Shown piece by piece: positions 3,478 through 64,000 of a stretch of 64,000 bases of DNA (positions are counted from its first letter, which is position 1; the number at the start of each line of letters is the position of its first letter). The notes under the pieces were generated by a model, which was given only the letters and a program-made list of their open reading frames with translations, had not been told where the DNA came from and made no database searches. The stretch is from positions 62,001 to 126,000 of IMG/VR virus record IMGVR_UViG_3300046810_000338; one strand, given 5' to 3'. Position numbers and translations under genes: made by a program.

Positions 3478-3877
3478 TTTGCATCGCTATAACAAATTGC
3501 ATAAGTTGGCCCAGAACTTCTCTGGCGAGGGCCTCAACCCTAACGAACACGGGCTTTTCCAAGACCGTGTGGTTCTTGAAGCGACGATGGGTGCCTCTAC
3601 TGCACTCATCGAAGCCATGAAGGACGTTAACGCCGCTGCTGGCGAAACTCCTTTTGTAAATCGTACGCTGCTTAAGGCCGCCGCTATTTTGGCACCGGCC
3701 ATCGCCAGTGTGATTGACGTCTTGAAAGAAGACGCTGTCTGTACGGTCGAAGCCAGTTTGTTCAAGGACTTCGCTGCCGTCACCGGGTATGCCGAGGGCC
3801 TGCGTGAAGTGGTTCCATACGTGGCATCTCTTCCCGATCTGCCACCGCCTGCTCGGCCTGATGGGGTGTCAGAATGA
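3470..3877 (+). CDS. Hypothetical protein, tandem paralog 2
   Basis: Start moved to ATG 3470 (AAGGAG RBS, overlaps previous stop); LKAAAILAPAIASVIDV motif. Confidence 0.8.
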   Translation: MSSLHRYNKLHKLAQNFSGEGLNPNEHGLFQDRVVLEATMGASTALIEAMKDVNAAAGETPFVNRTLLKAAAILAPAIASVIDVLKEDAVCTVEASLFKDFAAVTGYAEGLREVVPYVASLPDLPPPARPDGVSE

Positions 3878-4365
3878 GCCGTCTGTCTAAATACGTTCAC
3901 CTCCACAAAGCCGTTACTTTCGGTGAGGAGTTGCATCTCGAAGAACTGGATGAAAATCCATTGCTCGAACCGATTCTGGTAGTATCGGCTGTCGGTGCCA
4001 TGACTGAAATGGCTGGCGGCATGATGCTCGACCAGTTCGCCCCTCCTGGCTCAACGCCCCCATCCGTTGACTACATGGCCAACTCGCTGGAAATGGCTCT
4101 GCGTGCTTCGGCCATTTTGGCTCCGGCAGTGGCAGATGTTATCGAGCTGTATCGCAACACTGACGCCTTCAACGAATGCTTCACTGAAGCTGACATGAAG
4201 GCCGATACTTGCCTGGCAGCACTGCGTCAGGTTCCTGAGTATGCAGCGGATAACCCAACCGTCGATCCCCAGATGGTTGAGACGTTCCAGCGGGCAGAAG
4301 AGGTCGAGGCTGCAAAGGTCCTGGCCCGCCTCAAAAAGGTAGAACAGATCCACACTCCCGATTAA
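3874..4365 (+). CDS. Acidic hypothetical protein, tandem paralog 3
   Basis: ATGA overlap with previous stop; LRASAILAPAVADVIEL motif. Confidence 0.8.
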   Translation: MSRLSKYVHLHKAVTFGEELHLEELDENPLLEPILVVSAVGAMTEMAGGMMLDQFAPPGSTPPSVDYMANSLEMALRASAILAPAVADVIELYRNTDAFNECFTEADMKADTCLAALRQVPEYAADNPTVDPQMVETFQRAEEVEAAKVLARLKKVEQIHTPD

Positions 4366-4377
4366 CAAAGGTGCACC

Positions 4378-5004
4378 ATGCAAATTATCTACGGTGGTGA
4401 TGATGTCGTATCGGAACTGATGTACGGTTCTCGATCCGATAACCTGATTCAAGAGTTGCGAAATAATCTCAACTTCAAGAATCCGCTACTCACCGAACAG
4501 GGTAAGGCGTACGCTGCAAGGGCAAATCAGGTATTTGAACAAGTATCTGGTTGGGATGTTGTGCGTGCAGCCCGTAAGGCTGTTAGCGCTATCTCTGGAT
4601 ATATCCGTAACGACCAAATCACCTTCTTTGATACGCTGGAACAGATTCAGACAGCGCCTCCGAAGATGCAGCGGTTCGTCATGGCTAGCTTGGAAATTCG
4701 TAAGAGCTACCAAGCAGGTCTTCTGAACGGATATAGCGAAAGCTATGTTGATATCCAACCCGGCATGATTGGCCATGATCACTACGACTACCGTGTGGCT
4801 TCCCACGGTATCGTTCAGACCACGGTCACTGATGAAGGTACTCCCCAGTACGAAGTTACTCAGTGGAAAATGGAGCTGGCTAAATGGGATGAGAAATTGT
4901 CTCAGAACAACCGGCTCGATCTGGCACGGACTTTCTCTGTTGCACATGCTGCACTCATTGCAATGATGGAAGATCCAACCAGCCGCTACGGTGATAAGTT
5001 GTAA
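4378..5004 (+). CDS. Conserved phiKZ-like core protein (probably gp59/Imp3-like)
   Basis: 208 aa, AAGGTG RBS, IYGG and YDYR motifs. Family assignment rests on synteny and recall only. Confidence 0.55.
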   Translation: MQIIYGGDDVVSELMYGSRSDNLIQELRNNLNFKNPLLTEQGKAYAARANQVFEQVSGWDVVRAARKAVSAISGYIRNDQITFFDTLEQIQTAPPKMQRFVMASLEIRKSYQAGLLNGYSESYVDIQPGMIGHDHYDYRVASHGIVQTTVTDEGTPQYEVTQWKMELAKWDEKLSQNNRLDLARTFSVAHAALIAMMEDPTSRYGDKL

Positions 5005-24196: not shown

Positions 24197-24778
24197 ATGA
24201 GTAAACATAATGCAGGTGCGTTTGGTAGCCGCAAGCGTGCTCCAGCTTCCACAGTAGCCGTTCAAGGTAACACCCTGACGTTCGACCCAGATCCACGTCC
24301 GTACTTCGCCGACTACGCTTCCATGGCGTTGGACTGCGAGGCACTGATCACCAGCGCTGGCATGGTACTGCCGTTCGTGCAATCGGAACTCGTCGGCCAG
24401 GTTAACGCCGGTGCGTTGAACCAGGACATCCTGATCCTGAATACCCACACTGCTGCGTTCAAGGGTCGTTTGGCGATCCTGCGTGCTGATACCGAAGAAC
24501 TGCGTGCCCGCATCACCTACGCCGGGCAAGACCAGGTGTTGGAGCTGATGAACCACGCTGAGTTGTTCGAGATCTTCATGAACGACTACACCCGCGTGGC
24601 GATGTTGTCCATCGACAACGTGCTCGAACACTTCCGTAAACTGGGTCAGGACATTCCGTATGTCTGCCCATTCAGCCCAGGCTTCCGTCAGGCAGTCGGC
24701 AAGTTCCAAATGAGTTCCGAGCAGTTCGCCAAGGCGACTGCTCCGATCACCCTCGGCGAAGTTCTTCAAGGCGAGTAA
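24197..24778 (+). CDS. Hypothetical protein
   Basis: 193 aa, AGGA RBS, biased codons. Confidence 0.75.
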   Translation: MSKHNAGAFGSRKRAPASTVAVQGNTLTFDPDPRPYFADYASMALDCEALITSAGMVLPFVQSELVGQVNAGALNQDILILNTHTAAFKGRLAILRADTEELRARITYAGQDQVLELMNHAELFEIFMNDYTRVAMLSIDNVLEHFRKLGQDIPYVCPFSPGFRQAVGKFQMSSEQFAKATAPITLGEVLQGE

Positions 24779-24781
24779 GAC

Positions 24782-26398
24782 ATGAACGAAGAAAATGAAA
24801 TCTCTGGCAGCCCTTTGCCAGAGAGCGATTTGGATGTCGAGACCCCGGTACCCCAAGAGGTACTGGCAGCCGACGCTGCGGTAGCCCCAATTCCTACCCC
24901 TGTCGATCCATCGTTTGATAACGACTCGGACTTCGATCAGGAACCGGTCTCGGCTAATCCAGGCTCCAGCAGTGTCTTCTCTGACGATCACTGGACCCAG
25001 GACAACGTGCAGGGTAAAGACCCTATCACCAAGCCTCTGGCACCGGGTGTGGTTCCTCCAGCGGTGATTCGCATGCCGTCGATGTCGATGGCCGATACCC
25101 AACTGGTTATCACTGCGCTGGAACCTGTGGCTGCTCAGTTGTCGCCAGCCGGTCGTGAATGGGCACAGGTTGTTCAGGACTCCATCTCTTTCCTGCATGA
25201 AGACGGCCAGTTCTCCGACAGCTTGAAACGTGAAGGTTCTAAGTGGACCCAGGTCATCGAGCACGAAGGCGTGAAGATGACGGCATCCGTGCCGGTATCT
25301 GATAAGCCTGCTCCTGGCACCAAGCTGGTTGGTACCGACGCAGACATTCAGCTGTCTCGCGTGCTCGGCACTTATGCCCGCATGATGTTCCCGCTGTGGC
25401 ACAGTGGTCTGTGGTTGAACGTAGCCGTGCCGTCGGGTAACGAGCTGCACGATCTGGAAACTCAGATGGCCACAGCCAAGTACGACCTCGGCTGGATCTC
25501 CAAGGGCCTGGCGTATTCCAACACCATGGTCTTGCAGAACATCACGTTCCTGAACTTCATTCTGGACCGTGTCGTGGGCACCAACGTCGATGATTCGACG
25601 GTGGCAGGGCTCAAGCGATATATGCGCATCACTGACCTCAACCCACTGGCTGGTTGGATGTCGGCATCGGTCTACCCGTCTGGCTTCCCGCTGGAACGTC
25701 CTTGCTCGGCCAACCCGCTCAAGTGCCACGAAGTCACTCGCGATACCCTGCGCTTGACCAAGATCGTCTGGAACGACTCGGCGTCACTCTCGCCTGAACA
25801 ACTCAAACATATGCAGCCTCGCCTGGCCGGTCGTAAGAAAACCGCCGACGATATGCAGAAGTATCAAGACGGGTTCTCCCGCATTGGTGCACGGGTTGTG
25901 GAACTCAAGCCTGGCCTGAGCGTTCGTTTCCTGCCTCCGACCATCGAGCAGTATGAACAGTCTGGTTTCTCCTGGATCGATCAGATCGAGAAGAACGCCA
26001 ACTCCATGCTGGCGACTATGTCGGAAGCTGAGCTGAACAAGTACATGACCGACCAGTATCAGCTGACGGCTATGCGCCAATACGCTCACTGGGTTGAAGC
26101 CATTGTCTACCCAGACGACGTCGAAGTCGTTGACCGTGAATCCATCAACAACTCGCTCAAGTCGCTGTCTACCGAAGACGCGGTCGTCGAAGTGTTTATG
26201 GCGGCGGTACGTAAGTACATCGACGACTGCACCATCACTGTCGTTGCCATCAACAACTACACCTGTCCCAAGTGCAACAAGTCCCAAGCGGTGGAGAAGA
26301 AGAACCCTCGGCTTATTCCGATCGATGCGGTCCACACTTTTTTCACCCTCAGCGGCCTGAAGACACAAATTACTCTATCGAGAAATATGGCGTTCTAG
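24782..26398 (+). CDS. Putative tail/baseplate assembly chaperone with Cys motifs (T4 gp26-like)
   Basis: 538 aa; PLWHSG, CSANPLKC and C-terminal CPKC motifs; function is inference. Confidence 0.55.
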   Translation: MNEENEISGSPLPESDLDVETPVPQEVLAADAAVAPIPTPVDPSFDNDSDFDQEPVSANPGSSSVFSDDHWTQDNVQGKDPITKPLAPGVVPPAVIRMPSMSMADTQLVITALEPVAAQLSPAGREWAQVVQDSISFLHEDGQFSDSLKREGSKWTQVIEHEGVKMTASVPVSDKPAPGTKLVGTDADIQLSRVLGTYARMMFPLWHSGLWLNVAVPSGNELHDLETQMATAKYDLGWISKGLAYSNTMVLQNITFLNFILDRVVGTNVDDSTVAGLKRYMRITDLNPLAGWMSASVYPSGFPLERPCSANPLKCHEVTRDTLRLTKIVWNDSASLSPEQLKHMQPRLAGRKKTADDMQKYQDGFSRIGARVVELKPGLSVRFLPPTIEQYEQSGFSWIDQIEKNANSMLATMSEAELNKYMTDQYQLTAMRQYAHWVEAIVYPDDVEVVDRESINNSLKSLSTEDAVVEVFMAAVRKYIDDCTITVVAINNYTCPKCNKSQAVEKKNPRLIPIDAVHTFFTLSGLKTQITLSRNMAF

Positions 26399-26883
26399 AG
26401 CACCCAGCCAAAGACAAGGTCATTAATACCTATCGTCACGTTAATGACCCCAACTTTGGTTTGGAGACAGATAGATTCGATGCCGAACTGGACCGCGTTA
26501 AATCAGTAATCAAAGATTCTGGTGAAAAGCTGGACTGGGTTGACAACGAGCTTATGATGCGGGCTATCTACGAGTCTGCATTCGGTATACGGAATCACTA
26601 CGGTCCGAAGGTCTCTCCGTTGGCTCCGGTCGCGGCCAACCCCAAGGAAGACTATCTGCCGTATTCTTCCAAGTACCGGGACCACGCTGTGTTCATCGAA
26701 GAGAAGGTGTTTGAGGCTACGGGCATGTCCATGCAGACATTCTTCGACAGACCTCGGGCAGACATCGAGATGGACTTTGCGCTGGTCAAGCAAAAGAACA
26801 AACGGCATGCTGCGGCGCTCAACGCTGCAACTAACCCTGGCGGTAAGCTTCCTCCGATACCTCCACTGCCACGCGGTAGATAA
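26338..26883 (+). CDS. Start-less ORF, probably the -1 frameshift extension of the upstream gene
   Basis: Open -1 frame from the T_TTT_TTC site at 26338-26344; no in-frame ATG/GTG with an RBS near the expected start; YESAFGI and MSMQTFFDRP segments; ends at a terminator. Confidence 0.55.
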   Translation, partial: FFHPQRPEDTNYSIEKYGVLEHPAKDKVINTYRHVNDPNFGLETDRFDAELDRVKSVIKDSGEKLDWVDNELMMRAIYESAFGIRNHYGPKVSPLAPVAANPKEDYLPYSSKYRDHAVFIEEKVFEATGMSMQTFFDRPRADIEMDFALVKQKNKRHAAALNAATNPGGKLPPIPPLPRGR

Positions 26884-26885
26884 TG

Positions 26886-26933
26886 GGCATACTCTCCCTC
26901 TTCCCCTAAAGGAAGAGGGAGAGGGCTTATGCC
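26886..26933. terminator. Bidirectional terminator
   Basis: GGCATA-CTCTCCCTCTTCC...GGAAGAGGGAGAG-GGCTTATGCC; overlaps the polymerase stop codon. Confidence 0.85.
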
Positions 26934-28690
26934 TCAGGTTCTTCTTTGTAACCGTCTGGGTAGTCCTTGTCGAACAACTCAAGCACTTGCCGAGTGTTAG
27001 GCAGTTGCAGCAGTTGCTGACAAATCATCGTGTGGTTCACGTATCCCCCGGTTAGGTCAATCCCAATGAACCTCCATTGTTCCTGTTCCATGCCATCTAC
27101 AGAGGACAGCTCGGTGACAGTTGTTGCCTTGTCAATGTTGAGCATGTCTTGCAGTTTAGGGTAGGTCGATACCACGTCGATGTCGGATACATGGGTGTGT
27201 AGCAGGGGCTGATGCCCTTCCATGTCCGAGACAAGGTCTACGTCGGCTTCTGGACCCATGTAGGCTGGCAGTGTAACAATCCAGTCTCTTAGGCCAGGGC
27301 TGAAGTCGTCGATCTCTGTCAACATCTGATCAGAGGTAGTACCGATGATGTTGCCACGCTTGAGACCAAAGAAGTGCAAGTCGTCTGCGATCATCTTAGG
27401 CTGAGAATCGTAGTTACGATACTCACTGGACTTAAGCAATGCGCCCAATGACATGGAGATGTCTTTGGTTGCCTCATCCAACTCCTCTACGCCGATATCA
27501 TCGTACAAGTTGTAGATGCAGTATTCCACTGGGAAATACTTCTGCATGAACGCATGCCACTCTTTCTTGATGAACCCATCGGCTTCCATGAACTTAAGCT
27601 TAGGTTGCAGCTTATGTTTACGCAGCAGATAGTCAAGACTGTACTCGGGCTCGTTAGGCAGCGCCGTACGAATCCGTTTGTACAACAACATCGAGTCACA
27701 GATGACAAAGCTTGCCTGGGTCTTACAGGTGTGCCATTGGTCAATTGGGTTGATAGGGTAAACTGTGTTCTTGCCCCCATCCTTCTTAACCTTGGTTGCA
27801 TCGCCCTGGTCCCATACAAAGTTGCGAAACTCACGAGGCACGCGTGGATCGCAGAACACGTCGGACGGATCGTAGCCAGAGTCCTTCAGCGCCTGCACAG
27901 ACTTTGGAATATCGAACACCATGTTAAAGATGGTGACGTAGTCTGGCTGCCATTCGTGAGCTGCTTTAAAGCAACCCTGTACAACCTGTGCCGGTAGCTC
28001 GTGTCGTTCAATGTGCATCGTCATGGGGTCGATGCCACGACGCTTGAGCACATCCCCGAGCAGCTCTTCAGCTTTCAGTCGAACCAAATGAATGAAGTTG
28101 GCTTTGTCTTCATCCGACAGAACAGAGTTGTGAATAAAGTCTTCGGTGATGTGCATCGAAGCTTTTTCTTTACAGGTAATAGAGGCAACGATAATCGCCT
28201 CTTCCTCACTGTTCATATCGGTTTCAATATCGTAAACCGCCACCTTAGCTGGGGTGGGGGTTTTAGGCCAGCGGTCCTTGTAGCCCCGCTTGACCAATAC
28301 CGGTGTTGTAATGTCAGCACCGTACAAATAAGGAGAGCGTGCAAGCTGTCTCAGACTGCCCCGCATACCGGGATTGCCCAGTGCCCTCGCGACCTTATTA
28401 TGTAGTTCATGCTGGGCACAGGTAAACTTTCTTACCTGGCTCAACGGGGCCCATGGCCGTTTGTCTTTATGCGTGCGGTACTTGTCCAACGTGACGTAAA
28501 AGTCGCGCTGATAGTTCTTGATCAACCGTAACCAAGGCAGTGGTGGACGTCCGTCTTTGAAGTGAATTAACTCTTTGACGACAACAACATCGTTCGCGCT
28601 TCCGTTGTTTGCTTTTGAGTAGGATGCGGACATGCACTCGTAGTAGTCGATCTCTTCTCGGTCCGGCATCTCAGGGTACATGAAAGCCAT
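26927..28690 (-). CDS. Split family B DNA polymerase, exonuclease/motif A subunit (phiKZ gp82-like)
   Basis: Exo I YDIETD, Exo II FNMVFDIP, Exo III YNLYDD, PolB motif A DIDVVSTYP; start moved to MAFMYP (GGAGA RBS). Confidence 0.9.
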   Translation of the reverse strand: MAFMYPEMPDREEIDYYECMSASYSKANNGSANDVVVVKELIHFKDGRPPLPWLRLIKNYQRDFYVTLDKYRTHKDKRPWAPLSQVRKFTCAQHELHNKVARALGNPGMRGSLRQLARSPYLYGADITTPVLVKRGYKDRWPKTPTPAKVAVYDIETDMNSEEEAIIVASITCKEKASMHITEDFIHNSVLSDEDKANFIHLVRLKAEELLGDVLKRRGIDPMTMHIERHELPAQVVQGCFKAAHEWQPDYVTIFNMVFDIPKSVQALKDSGYDPSDVFCDPRVPREFRNFVWDQGDATKVKKDGGKNTVYPINPIDQWHTCKTQASFVICDSMLLYKRIRTALPNEPEYSLDYLLRKHKLQPKLKFMEADGFIKKEWHAFMQKYFPVEYCIYNLYDDIGVEELDEATKDISMSLGALLKSSEYRNYDSQPKMIADDLHFFGLKRGNIIGTTSDQMLTEIDDFSPGLRDWIVTLPAYMGPEADVDLVSDMEGHQPLLHTHVSDIDVVSTYPKLQDMLNIDKATTVTELSSVDGMEQEQWRFIGIDLTGGYVNHTMICQQLLQLPNTRQVLELFDKDYPDGYKEEPEA

Positions 28691-28755
28691 GAAAAATCTC
28701 CAGCGTGAATTCCCCAAATCATCTAAAACGTATCTCTCATCGGTAGGAACCCAAG

Positions 28756-61684: not shown

Positions 61685-64000
61685 TCAGATGACCGGTTCA
61701 TCGTTCCCAGAGTCATCGTTCCCGCCATCGCTATTGCCGCTCCCAGAATCACCATTCCCAGAATCGGAATTGTCACCGCTGCTATCGCTGTCAGAACTGT
61801 CGCTATCTGAGTCGAAGTCGAAATCACCGCCATCGCCATCATCATCGTCATCGCCAAAGTCGAACCCGTCATCGTCATCACTTCCGTAGTCGTCGTTATA
61901 GTCATCACCGCCGCCGGTGCTACTGCCTTCGCCTTCTTCAGCCCCTTCAACACGGGCTGTGTCCATGCGCTCTTTGAGAGTCACCCACTCATTCTCGCTA
62001 ATGAGGGCAGAAGAGTAGAGCTTAAGGCCAACCACTTTAATGACCTTGTTCATGTCGTTGATGTTTTCCATCCCCTCATTGAACAAGATATTGCCGTAGT
62101 CTTCTGCTGTGCCGACTTTGAACATGTCGGTCAGTTGCGGCATGATGTTGTTTTCACGGCAGTAACGCAGCACCAGAGTGGACTTAACGCTGGCTTTAAC
62201 CAGAGTGACCCATTCATTACTGCTTGTGCCAACTGCTTGTGCGCCCAACACGTCGTCTGGCAGAATCAGGTCCAGCAGTTTCTCCAACGCATCGGAGTAT
62301 TCACCCAGTTCAGTCATGCGATTGCTCAGGCCAGTATCTGGCCGTGGCAGAGTGCAGGTGTAGATACTGAAGAAGATCTCGACGTATTTGTCGATACCCA
62401 CTGTAGCAACCTTCTCTTTACCACCCAGATCTTCAACGTACTGACCCACCACTTCACGCAACTGATCCATGATACCCTGGTGGTTGATCACGATCTTGAT
62501 GATCGTTTCACGGGTCAGGATATTGGTACGGTCCTGGATAATGATTGCGCGTTTGAGAGACAGTTCGTTACTGGTCGCAATCTTGGAGGAGAACTCAATC
62601 TGGTTAGACAGATCGACAATCTCTGGCGCCAAGCCATAGCCCATGGTTTGACGTTTGGCCAGGGATTCATCCATGGACAAATCGATCTCACGATACTGGA
62701 TATCACGAGGAACGATCTCAACTTTGGTCCCTGGGTAGTTATCACCCCCTTCCACGCTTACCGACAGGCCAGAGTCCTGAGCCATTTCGATCATGCGTTT
62801 AGGGTTGGAGGTAGCCCAAGGAATAGAGTTGCTACGACGACGTGCATACTCGTGGACGATCATCTCTTTGGTGCGAGACTTGTTAGGATCGTCTTCATCG
62901 ATCGTGATCTTCATGTCACGGTGATCGATCGAGTTACGGATCATGGTCTCAACGTTCATGAACAGCGTCAGCGCGCGGATAGAGGAAAGGATCTTGTTAT
63001 CCTCCATCAGAGAGCGACCGGTGCCGTTGTCGTTGAAGCGATACGCCCAGTAGACCACCATGTCGGCTGGGATGTAAACCAGACGAGTTTGCTTACCCGA
63101 CAGAGCCCGCTCAAACATCAGGTCGTATGCCATCTGCTGACGACTGACGGTGACATTACCCACACTGCCTGCCATGAAGCGGCTTTCAATGTCCCGTGCT
63201 GCCATGTCGCGAAATGCCATGGACGCCTGTTGAGACATCTGTTGAGTGGCGTAGCCGTCTTCATCGCGCAGCTGACTGGCAGCAGCGCTCAACATACCAG
63301 ACAGTGCAGAGCGGTTGTTAAACACGCCGGCATTGATGGTGTTGAAGTAGTCGGTACGCGCCGTCCTGGAGATCATGCTACCGAATTCATCCAGGATAGC
63401 AATGAACCCGATGGGCTTGTCTGGCTTACCCGGTGGGTGAATCGCCATCAGTGCTTCGGTGGAACCTGGCTTGATCAGAGGACCACCAATCGTTTCACGA
63501 CTGGCTTCTTCTTGACGGTTCAACATGAAGATCTCTTCGGCGCGTAGGTTGCCGTTGTGATAAATGTCTTCAATGTTACGGTAGGAGTTACCACCCAGAC
63601 CTTCCAGCACCATGTTCTGCTTGGCAGTCATGGCAGACTGGGTGATGTCTTCTAACTTCATCATCATCGGGTTGTCGTAAATCTCTGGAGACACCCAACC
63701 CTTGCATTTAGTAAAGACACCACACTGCATAACCGGCAGTGGCTGGGTTGGAATAACCAGTTCCGAATTGACGTCATTGAGCATGGACTCAAGTGTCATC
63801 TTGCGGGCAGTAGGTGTGGCGCTTGGAGCGCCCATGTAGCCAACTGGCTTGCCGATGTTCTTGAGGTCGGTAGATTTACGGTACTCTTCCAGAGCAACCT
63901 TCTTACCAGTACGGCCGTTGATCAGGTCGTCCAGCGAGTTTTCTGGGATGATAAGCGTAACGTCGGCGCCTTCCACGAAAAGAGCTTTACGCAATTTATC
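61685..64000 (-). CDS. Portal protein (phiKZ gp129-like), 5'-truncated by the window edge
   Basis: Frame open to the edge; HPPGKPDKPIGFIAILDEFG, YRFNDNGTGRSLMED, NSIDHRDMKITIDEDDP segments; long acidic tail. Confidence 0.8.
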   Translation of the reverse strand, partial: DKLRKALFVEGADVTLIIPENSLDDLINGRTGKKVALEEYRKSTDLKNIGKPVGYMGAPSATPTARKMTLESMLNDVNSELVIPTQPLPVMQCGVFTKCKGWVSPEIYDNPMMMKLEDITQSAMTAKQNMVLEGLGGNSYRNIEDIYHNGNLRAEEIFMLNRQEEASRETIGGPLIKPGSTEALMAIHPPGKPDKPIGFIAILDEFGSMISRTARTDYFNTINAGVFNNRSALSGMLSAAASQLRDEDGYATQQMSQQASMAFRDMAARDIESRFMAGSVGNVTVSRQQMAYDLMFERALSGKQTRLVYIPADMVVYWAYRFNDNGTGRSLMEDNKILSSIRALTLFMNVETMIRNSIDHRDMKITIDEDDPNKSRTKEMIVHEYARRRSNSIPWATSNPKRMIEMAQDSGLSVSVEGGDNYPGTKVEIVPRDIQYREIDLSMDESLAKRQTMGYGLAPEIVDLSNQIEFSSKIATSNELSLKRAIIIQDRTNILTRETIIKIVINHQGIMDQLREVVGQYVEDLGGKEKVATVGIDKYVEIFFSIYTCTLPRPDTGLSNRMTELGEYSDALEKLLDLILPDDVLGAQAVGTSSNEWVTLVKASVKSTLVLRYCRENNIMPQLTDMFKVGTAEDYGNILFNEGMENINDMNKVIKVVGLKLYSSALISENEWVTLKERMDTARVEGAEEGEGSSTGGGDDYNDDYGSDDDDGFDFGDDDDDGDGGDFDFDSDSDSSDSDSSGDNSDSGNGDSGSGNSDGGNDDSGNDEPVI

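Follow-up and report, generated by a model that had tools for sequence, protein, structure and literature searches.

A core gene of phiKZ-like jumbo phages, whose predicted fold makes it a distant relative of the T4 baseplate-hub assembly protein gp26, probably makes a second protein of 700 residues when ribosomes slip back by one base on a run of T's, and this arrangement is found in every related locus that we examined, although the database and most GenBank records call the two parts as separate genes. The gene (gene A) and the extension in the −1 frame (B) lie within the 64,000-nt stretch of the IMG/VR record IMGVR_UViG_3300046810_000338 (the window, positions 62,001 to 126,000 of that record). 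We found no earlier report of this frameshift in searches of the literature, although these were not exhaustive and an earlier report cannot be excluded. What is already known is the general logic of −1 frameshifting that extends phage assembly and structural proteins, and what appears to be new is a deeply conserved site of this type in a different protein family.

Sequence organization of the locus

The features of the locus are listed in Table 1. The observation on which this study is based, namely an in-phase slippery heptamer 17 codons before the stop of a 538-aa gene and a −1 frame that continues without a start of its own, is confirmed by the sequence. Codons 519–521 of gene A read ACT TTT TTC and give an in-phase X_XXY_YYZ heptamer that is followed by 17 sense codons and TAG, and the −1 frame is open from 26215 to 26883. 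Slippage at this site would give a product of 521 + 179 = 700 aa with the junction ...AVHTFF|HPQRPEDTNYSIEK, as in the original prediction. One detail of that prediction was in error, as the codon at 26272, inside the upstream gene, is GTG and not ATG. Between the heptamer and 26461 the −1 frame contains no ATG, GTG or TTG, and neither TTG 26461 nor ATG 26554 is preceded by a Shine-Dalgarno (SD) sequence like those of the neighboring genes. The hairpin that had been proposed to begin 4 nt downstream of the heptamer does exist, but it has only 4 bp, and the 96 nt after the heptamer fold no better than shuffled sequences (z = 0.07). Runs of T6 occur in the window about as often as in shuffles (23 compared to 26.7 expected), so the site taken alone is not significant, and its significance comes entirely from conservation.

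Table 1. Coordinates of the features at the A/B locus (positions are those of the window).
Position	Strand	Feature	Remarks
24782..26398	+	Gene A, frame-0 product of 538 aa	Ortholog of phiKZ gp77 / PhiPA3 gp074 / Goslar gp081 = Chimalliviridae core gene cg18
26338..26344	+	Slippery heptamer T_TTT_TTC	Codons ACT TTT TTC, Phe520-Phe521; proposed −1 shift site
26344..26883	+	−1 frame extension (B), 179 codons plus stop	phrog_12109; ortholog of PhiPA3 gp073 / Goslar gp082 / phiKZ 076.4; predicted disordered linker followed by a helical domain
24782..26883	+	Span of the inferred trans-frame product A-B, 700 aa	Residues 1-521 from frame 0, then 179 residues from the −1 frame
26345..26395	+	Dual-coding overlap	Frame-0 tail of A, TLSGLKTQITLSRNMAF; −1 peptide, HPQRPEDTNYSIEKYGVL
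26399..26460	+	Linker after the stop codon of A, coding in the −1 frame	Upstream of the first canonical start; holds the conserved motif RHVNDPNFGL
26461..26463	+	TTG used as start by the database gene call (P0016, 140 aa)	Leu codon of the conserved FGL motif; probably not a real start
26349..26360	+	Small hairpin TCAG-CGGC-CTGA	4 nt after the heptamer; real but weak, not supported as a stimulator
26885..26932	.	Strong inverted repeat, about 13-bp stem	Between the convergent + operon (A/B) and the minus-strand 596-aa gene; probably a bidirectional terminator that ends the A/B transcript

Conservation of the frame and of the slippery site

The original prediction had named the absence of the slippery site from orthologs, together with a good independent start, as an outcome that would count against it, and in the comparison of related phages the same in-phase T-run was present in 110 of 110 loci. 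While a search for close DNA relatives among GenBank phages returned none, and a scan of IMG/VR with peptide patterns of the single protein also returned none, protein-level and alignment-based comparisons yielded 110 loci. In the first set of 31 genomes, comprising the window, 9 metagenomic relatives and 21 GenBank phages (including phiKZ, PhiPA3, Goslar, RSL2, an SPN3US-like phage, PCH45, Vibrio phages and a Bacillus phage), B is in the −1 frame of A in 31 of 31, with no −1 stops from the FF site to B, whereas the +1 frame has stops in 25 of 31. In 79 of 79 further IMG/VR loci recovered by the alignment-based scan, which form 29 clusters at 45% identity or more, a hit to the B profile occurs only in the −1 frame. 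The heptamer is T_TTT_TTN in 97 loci (28 + 69 in the two sets), G_TTT_TTN in 9 (3 + 6) and a shorter T_TTT_N in 4, so that 13 of 110 loci have imperfect heptamers. The codon before FF encodes T, I, L, G, Y or V but ends in T, and where frame 0 reads V-F-L instead of x-F-F, as in pEa54 and AgentSmith, the run is kept as GTT TTT TTR. The entry point is pinned by −1 stops that lie 0–2 nt upstream of the run in four of the loci (L078, L101, L067 and L070), and the conserved −1 peptide starts right after the run.

Within the dual-coding overlap the −1 frame is the more constrained one. Across 10 clade members the mean amino acid identity is 0.88 in the −1 frame compared to 0.76 in frame 0, and differences from the consensus are 22 synonymous and 16 non-synonymous in the −1 frame but 9 and 29, respectively, in frame 0. 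The motif in the linker is conserved in the clade, and as (D/E)xxGH[VI]xxPxFG[LY] in distant phages, and such conserved −1 motifs lie upstream of, or across, the annotated starts of B. For example, the PhiPA3 ATG and the LucasX GTG sit inside the GH[VI]xxPxFG motif, and two loci, L007 and L012, have no start for 165 and 126 nt after the stop of A. The Leu codon that serves as the TTG start in the window's gene call is not TTG in L007, L009, L012 and L013, the first three of which have no gene call for B while L013 is called short, and conserved residues lie upstream of it. There is no conserved start codon at any aligned position.

Gene callers fail to call or truncate B in many genomes. The original prediction was correct that records of phiKZ-like phages show two separate genes, and phiKZ itself has a 218-nt "gap" and a truncated 80-aa ORF, 076.4. 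None of the 150 best family representatives is about 700 aa, so the two-frame arrangement is maintained rather than fused. In published mass spectrometry of Goslar virions the A ortholog (gp081) gives 24 peptides and about 22 copies while the B ortholog (gp082) gives 1 peptide and about 3 copies, which is compatible with a minor A-B species, although the B signal is a single peptide from a preparation that also held non-virion assemblies, and neither protein is in the cryoEM model. No junction peptide (in the window, LIPIDAVHTFFHPQR; in phiKZ, the peptide spanning ...MLSTFF|YFGGLEVK) has been seen.

No stimulatory RNA element was found; such elements are common at programmed −1 frameshift sites but not obligatory. 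Single-sequence folds of the 31 genomes and the clade alignment show no shared downstream stem-loop or pseudoknot, and no upstream SD-like stimulator was found. The sequence of the small hairpin is invariant across the clade, with one loop change in L013, but this is explained by dual coding, and no covariation is possible. A terminator-like hit at 26320-26332, followed by the T-run, is a weak 5-bp stem with G-T pairs that is not conserved in relatives, and it was rejected.

Identity of the A and B proteins

Gene A is an ortholog of the Chimalliviridae core gene cg18 (Goslar gp081 / phiKZ gp077), with a match to phrog_4585 (E 4.5e-96), 205 matching phage records, and conserved synteny with the gp78/gp79/gp80-like genes. 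The original prediction described the gene as a putative tail chaperone matching the lambda G/GT and P2 E/E′ arrangement, and this interpretation is only partly supported: the programmed −1 shift into a start-less ORF is strongly supported by comparative evidence, but the functional label and the family assignment are not supported as stated. Neither A nor B has a Pfam match. Searches of the PDB by sequence with A and B, Foldseek searches of the PDB and Swiss-Prot with A and of the PDB with B, and a wide VIA-align search with A (best Z 6.6) gave only noise, with no sequence or fold similarity of A to G, E or any solved chaperone. In addition, A is 538 aa rather than about 100–150 aa, and it does not lie between the tail tube and tape-measure genes. 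It sits beside virion RNA polymerase genes, and its neighbors are an RNA polymerase beta-like gene, a gp79-like gene, a gp78-like gene and a convergent DNA-polymerase-family gene.

Gene A is, however, a remote structural relative of T4 gp26 (PF12322), whose function comes from the literature (PMC3004832) and which Leiman et al. list as a "hub assembly chaperone." A Foldseek search of BFVD with the AF2 model of A (pLDDT 89.3) matches many gp26-family proteins of about 250 aa (prob ∼1.0, TM by target 0.5–0.59), including several "baseplate hub assembly protein, T4-like" and "baseplate hub subunit" entries at E 2e-4 to 5e-3, and the ESM Atlas links A to PF12322 clusters (TM 0.64 by hit), although both sides of these comparisons are predicted models. 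The C-termini share "CPxCG ... FFxL." In contrast, the Pfam HMM does not detect the relationship, as T4 gp26 itself scores 8.8e-64 but P0001 and 8 diverse orthologs give no hit at E <= 1, and A is 2.5 times longer. T4 gene 26 encodes FF as TTC TTT, which is not slippery, and it is followed by gene 25, which has its own ATG. The AF2 model of B contains only helices, with the first 35 residues disordered, and is of low confidence (pLDDT 65.6), so no function is inferred from it, and an Atlas search with B gave scores of 0.76 only, which is not a match. A "DPxFG" shared by B and T4 gp25 is suggestive to the eye, but the hhalign probability is 0.4% and a relationship was rejected.

Interpretation and comparison with known systems

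We consider programmed −1 ribosomal frameshifting to be the likely explanation. In this view, when ribosomes decode Phe520-Phe521 on the heptamer a minority of them slip one base backward, the two tRNA-Phe re-pair on UUU UUU, and these ribosomes then read the −1 frame through the stop codon of A to give an A-B protein that lacks the last 17 residues of A and carries a disordered linker plus a helical B domain. The conserved N-terminal part of B would be made only in this way, and the phage would obtain A and A-B in a fixed, unequal ratio from one mRNA, as lambda does with G/GT. The analysis itself establishes the site, the open frame, the lack of a credible start, the family-wide conservation of phase and heptamer, and purifying selection on the −1 frame inside the overlap, while it is inferred, from DNA sequence and without direct protein, ribosome-profiling or reporter evidence, that the trans-frame protein is made, that the slip is ribosomal, that its efficiency is low, and that A and A-B act in baseplate-hub or tail assembly. 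Some evidence weighs against this model in addition to the imperfect heptamers and the lack of a stimulator, since U_UUU_UUN is a comparatively weak shifter in E. coli (PMC5009743), and many relatives do have some start codon near B, so that B could also be made on its own in some phages.

The main rival, which we regard as unlikely but cannot separate from a ribosomal shift using assembled DNA contigs of one probable source sample, is programmed transcriptional slippage, in which the phage or host RNA polymerase adds one extra U on the T-run in a fraction of transcripts and ordinary translation then yields the identical fusion. The site is a homopolymeric T-run of 5–9 nt in all loci, phiKZ-like phages use their own unusual RNA polymerases, and no RNA structure of the kind that often accompanies ribosomal frameshifting was found. 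However, the run is only T6 in the window's clade and T5 in about 8 loci (Noxifer-like loci and the T_TTT_N cases), whereas known bacterial programmed slippage sites usually have runs of about 9 (PMC5009743), and the extra T is added on the 5′ side at a wobble position, which is exactly what tandem tRNA re-pairing needs.

A more doubtful alternative is that there is no recoding and that B is an ordinary gene initiated at TTG 26461, at ATG 26554, or at a near-cognate codon such as ATT 26422, the shared −1 phase being a relic of an ancestral stop/start overlap (ATGA or TAATG), which always puts the second gene in the −1 frame. Most records do call B separately, RP12 has an ATG overlapping the stop of A, T4 genes 26 and 25 overlap as TAATG, and FF is an invariant dipeptide of family A, so part of the T-run is explained by protein constraint. 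However, this cannot explain the lack of −1 stops from the T-run onward in 110 of 110 loci with spacers of very different length, the stronger constraint on the −1 frame inside the tail of A, or the conserved −1 motifs upstream of every candidate start; there is no conserved start codon or SD, and the wobble T before FF is conserved across six different amino acids. An assembly indel in an error-prone homopolymer of a metagenomic contig, or a decayed junction, is effectively refuted, as a second assembler reproduces the stretch with 0 differences, frame 0 continues after the run into a conserved C-terminus (FFTLxGxK), and the same arrangement is found in 109 other loci, including many isolate genomes.

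The resemblance to lambda G/GT and P2 E/E+E′ is one of logic and not of family, and "chaperone-like, with G/GT-like logic" remains a fair analogy. In both cases the two-frame arrangement rather than the sequence is conserved across very divergent phages, no strong stimulator is evident, and there is an assembly-chaperone connection, here through T4 gp26, while the minor extended form is in our case inferred from comparative evidence. The heptamer is T_TTT_TTN rather than G_GGA_AAG, and G and GT are absent from virions (PMC5009743), whereas the Goslar orthologs are detected in a virion preparation, albeit the one that contained non-virion assemblies. In T7 gene 10A/10B and in other extensions of structural proteins (Listeria phage PSA/A118, Ig-domain additions to tail proteins) a structural or assembly protein likewise gains a C-terminal extension in a minority of molecules by frameshifting near its stop codon, but the protein family and shift site differ, and here the extension is a conserved, separately recognizable family that is annotated as its own gene. 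E. coli dnaX (tau/gamma) shares tandem −1 slippage on a homopolymeric X_XXY_YYZ heptamer in a bacterial translation system, but it uses A_AAA_AAG with an upstream SD and a downstream hairpin and shifts at about 50% to a truncated product, whereas here no such stimulators were found and the shift lengthens the product.

The Chimalliviridae (phiKZ, PhiPA3, 201phi2-1, Goslar, and SPN3US-like phages) are among the most intensively studied phages today. If the shift is real, a core gene makes an unannotated protein of about 700 aa, the downstream "gene" is mis-annotated, truncated or missing in several hundred public genomes, and proteomic searches and knock-outs that treat the two ORFs as independent would have been misread. 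It would add a recoding site kept across at least 29 lineages at under 45% identity and in hosts from Pseudomonas to Bacillus, apparently without a stimulatory RNA structure, and it gives a concrete handle on the function of gp26-like hub proteins, by asking why a fixed ratio of short and extended forms is needed. A more speculative reading, possible but doubtful on present evidence, is that A and A-B are the counterpart of the G/GT pair in jumbo phages and perhaps in the wider T4-like lineage, such that a fixed A:A-B ratio set by ribosome slippage would govern hub, tape-measure or tube initiation and the B domain would recruit a second tail component. This would extend the rule of a conserved tail-assembly frameshift to a lineage thought to lack it, and would assign a mechanism to the poorly understood gp26 family.

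The inverted repeat downstream of B was not flagged by a scan for T-tail terminators, and the same 48 nt recur in inverted orientation elsewhere in the genome.

Genomic context and anatomy of the site

Gene A encodes a protein of 538 aa in which codons 519-521 read ACT TTT TTC, and T_TTT_TTC is therefore an in-phase heptamer of the type X_XXY_YYZ that is followed by 17 sense codons and TAG. A -1 slip on the two Phe codons would give a product of 521 + 179 = 700 aa, with a junction in which ...AVHTFF is followed by HPQRPEDTNYSIEK. The original prediction of a slippery heptamer joining the 538-aa gene to a start-less ORF in the -1 frame holds as an observation, and its coordinates and arithmetic are right, with the single exception that the codon at 26272, which had been read as ATG, is GTG. 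After the heptamer the first canonical start in the -1 frame is a TTG, which the source database used for its 140-aa gene call (P0016), and the next is an ATG, and neither has a Shine-Dalgarno like those of neighboring genes. However, T6 runs are as frequent in the window as in shuffled sequence (23 against 26.7 expected), and on its own the site proves nothing.

Gene A belongs to phrog_4585 (E 4.5e-96) and the downstream reading frame, B, to phrog_12109, both PHROGs of unknown function, and a Pfam search finds nothing for either. A tblastn search finds A in 205 phage records, all of them phiKZ-like jumbo phages of Pseudomonas, Erwinia, Salmonella, Serratia, Ralstonia, Vibrio, Klebsiella and others. 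Notes in these records identify A as the ortholog of phiKZ gp77, PhiPA3 gp074 and 201phi2-1 gp136, and B as that of PhiPA3 gp073 and 201phi2-1 gp135, while in the published Chimalliviridae core-genome table A is cg18 (Goslar gp081/phiKZ gp077).

The window is part of a 228.5-kb IMG/VR virus record, and the surroundings of A and B are not a tail-gene module. Upstream on the minus strand are an RNA-polymerase-beta-like gene and a gp79-like gene, and a gp78-like ORF lies immediately before A. This 193-aa ORF has no PHROG match at E <= 1e-5, although an ORF of similar size precedes gene A in every relative examined. The convergent 596-aa gene after A and B hits PHROG 3011, 'DNA polymerase' (E 1e-178), whereas in PhiPA3 the region after the B ortholog holds small ORFs and then a RAD2/SF2 helicase, and hence the downstream synteny differs between lineages. 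The convergent gene is separated from the A/B operon by a strong inverted repeat with a G+C-rich stem of about 13 bp (CTCTCCCTCTTCC...GGAAGAGGGAGAG), and the recurrence of the same 48 nt in inverted orientation elsewhere in the genome suggests a repeated terminator element.

Coordinates of the features discussed in the text
Feature	Record	Position	Strand	Remark
ORF upstream of gene A	window	24197-24778	+	193 aa, at the position of phiKZ gp78
Gene A	window	24782-26398	+	538 aa
Open -1 frame	window	26215-26883		
GTG codon	window	26272		
Weak stem and T-run	window	26320-26344		GATCG-ATG-CGGTC, then CACAC and the T-run
Heptamer T_TTT_TTC	window	26338-26344		Codons ACT TTT TTC
Overlap of the two frames	window	26345-26395		Frame-0 tail of A and -1 peptide
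B motif NDPNFGLE	window	26440-26460		Compared with T4 gp25 residues 48-60
TTG	window	26461		Database start, P0016
ATG	window	26554		
Inverted repeat	window	26885-26932		Between A/B and the 596-aa gene
Second copy of the 48 nt	Logan contig	121127-121174		Inverted orientation
Convergent 596-aa gene	window	26927-28717	minus	PHROG 3011
Unannotated 'gap' after gp77	phiKZ (locus L014)	2479-2698		
Gene 26	T4 (locus L032)	3803-4429	minus	

Conservation of the frame relation and of the T-run

Whether the heptamer and the phase overlap are conserved at this junction in other Chimalliviridae had been named beforehand as a test of the prediction, and we examined two sets of relatives. The first set holds nine metagenomic relatives (51-60% identity in A) and 21 GenBank phages chosen to span the family. 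In all 31 genomes, the window included, B is in the -1 frame of A and the -1 frame has no stop from the conserved FF site into B, whereas the +1 frame has stops in 25 of 31. The in-phase heptamer is T_TTT_TTN in 28 genomes and G_TTT_TTN in three (FLC9, PhiPA3 and Noxifer). The codon before FF encodes Thr, Ile, Leu, Gly, Tyr or Val, yet it ends in T, and in pEa_SNUABM_54 and the Bacillus phage AgentSmith, where frame 0 reads V-F-L instead of x-F-F, the run is kept as GTT TTT TTG/A. The nucleotide run is therefore conserved beyond what the invariant Phe-Phe of the protein family requires.

The second set came from an alignment-based scan of IMG/VR, which returned 80 further loci, of which 79 could be evaluated; they form 29 clusters at 45% identity or more in A, and at least two of them (Noxifer and RP12) duplicate the first set. 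In the 79 loci a profile of B matches only the -1 frame, which is open for 151-183 codons from the T-run. Of these, 69 have T_TTT_TTN, six have G_TTT_TTN and four (L063, L075, L108 and L110) have only a T5 run, CTT TTT ATT or GTT TTT AYC, that is T_TTT_N, which could support only single-tRNA (P-site) slippage, yet B is still in the open -1 frame. In four IMG/VR loci (L078, L101, L067 and L070) a -1-frame stop lies 0-2 nt upstream of the run, and entry into the -1 frame cannot be upstream of the run there. Because the conserved -1 peptide begins immediately after it, the shift is pinned to the run.

Comparative evidence for translation of the -1 frame from the heptamer

In the ten members of the clade of the window, 32 nt around the site (CACAC-T6-CACCCTCAGCGGCCTGAAGAC) are identical in nine and differ by two bases in the metagenomic relative L013, although the proteins are only 51-60% identical. 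Within the overlap the -1 peptide is better conserved than the frame-0 tail of A, with a mean identity of 0.88 against 0.76, and differences from the consensus are 22 synonymous and 16 non-synonymous in the -1 frame but 9 and 29, respectively, in frame 0. After the stop codon of A the -1 frame carries the conserved RHVNDPNFGL(D/E)T, upstream of any start, and two members of the clade, L007 and L012, have no ATG, GTG or TTG for 165 and 126 nt after the stop, respectively. The TTG used by gene callers in the window and in the relatives L010 and L011 is simply the Leu codon of FGL, and where that codon is CTN, callers find no gene or a truncated one. No start or near-cognate codon is conserved at any aligned position.

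Across the whole family a motif (D/E)xxGH[VI]xxPxFG[LY] precedes the core of B. The annotated ATG of PhiPA3 gp073 and the GTG of LucasX gp95 lie inside it, and phiKZ, PhiPA3, Noxifer and Xoo-sp14 share further upstream motifs. Public annotation reflects the problem, as phiKZ has a 218-nt 'gap' after gp77 and a truncated ORF, 076.4, of 80 aa, and pEa54, AH06, CR5 and AgentSmith show the same pattern. In the GenBank records of phiKZ and of loci L016, L020, L030 and L031 the unannotated stretch after the gp77 ortholog is 160-220 nt and is followed by a truncated downstream ORF, while in the relatives L005, L007, L009 and L012 gene callers found no downstream + strand gene or placed spurious minus-strand ORFs over it. 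None of the 150 best of 1335 family representatives has the length of an in-frame A-B fusion. Hence, evolution keeps two frames rather than fusing or separating them, which is the signature of a need for both products.

Proposed mechanism and comparison with known frameshifted genes

We propose that the most economical reading is tandem -1 ribosomal slippage of the two tRNA-Phe on U_UUU_UUC. No stimulator was found, as the 96 nt after the site fold no better than shuffles (z = 0.07) and the folds of 31 genomes share no structure. The hairpin of the original prediction is a 4-bp stem whose invariance is explained by dual coding, and a weak 5-bp stem with a G-T pair that a terminator scan flags before the T-run is not conserved in relatives and is probably due to chance. 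U_UUU_UUN heptamers are weak shifters in E. coli (PMC5009743), and we therefore expect a low efficiency, as in lambda G/GT. The only quantitative hint comes from virion mass spectrometry of Goslar, in which the A ortholog (gp081) has 24 peptides, 49% coverage and an estimated 15-35 copies and the B ortholog (gp082) has one peptide and an estimated 2-5 copies, in a preparation that contained non-virion assemblies; neither protein is in the cryoEM model.

The analysis establishes the heptamer, the open frame and their conservation, whereas the production of an A-B protein, the ribosomal nature of the slip and its efficiency are inferred. The frameshift interpretation is strongly supported by comparative evidence but is not shown at the protein level; we regard it as very likely that recoding at the T-run produces an A-B fusion, and as probable, with somewhat less confidence, that the recoding is ribosomal. 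Transcriptional slippage on the T-run would give the same protein and cannot be excluded, although the short runs (T6 here and T5 in about eight loci) argue against it. An assembly indel is ruled out, since a second assembly of the probable source sample reproduces the stretch exactly.

The arrangement works like lambda G/GT, P2 E/E+E' and T7 10A/10B, in that a minor C-terminally extended form would be made by a -1 shift near the stop codon. It is not a member of the G/E chaperone family, as it has no sequence or fold similarity to them, is of a different size and at a different genomic position, and its ortholog is probably present in virion preparations. The original interpretation was therefore only partly supported, since the 'tail chaperone' label holds only as an analogy plus a remote link to T4 gp26. 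The site is best described as a new, deeply conserved recoding site in the gp26-like core gene of Chimalliviridae, and literature searches with full-text look-ups found no earlier description of it in the library searched, which is incomplete.

Predicted structures and the link to T4 gp26

An AlphaFold model of A built on 110 homologs is confident (pLDDT 89.3, pTM 0.85). The N-terminal ~60 residues are predicted to be disordered, and a C-terminal helix (516-537) contains the shift site, so that A-B would lose most of that helix. B is modeled poorly (pLDDT 65.6), as a disordered 35-residue linker followed by helices, with a confident helical region near the C-terminus, and it matches nothing known in the searches made. 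By analogy, we infer that B adds a binding surface to a minority of A molecules. The conserved 'DPxFGxD' of B looks like the signature 'PFDPEFGCD' of T4 gp25, and T4 gene 25 occupies the position after gene 26, but hhalign gives only 0.4% probability, B is predicted to be all-helical, and no relation to gp25 is detectable.

No solved structure resembles A in the searches made. Against predicted viral structures, A matches its Chimalliviridae orthologs and also many proteins of about 250 aa named 'baseplate hub assembly protein, T4-like' or 'baseplate hub subunit', with probability ~1.0 and TM by target of 0.5-0.59. The ESM Atlas makes the same link, to Pfam PF12322, which is the T4 gp26 family. 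A profile comparison aligns the C-termini (T4 '...AVPIKCPECGK...EFFELL' with A '...AINNYTCPKCNK...HTFFTLS'), but at low probability, and no A ortholog reaches PF12322 by HMMER. A is thus a remote, enlarged relative of gp26, which Leiman et al. list as a 'hub assembly chaperone' while noting genetic evidence that it may be part of the hub (PMC3004832). T4 gene 26 itself encodes FF as TTC TTT, which is not slippery, and it is followed in the -1 frame by gene 25, which has its own ATG in a TAATG overlap.
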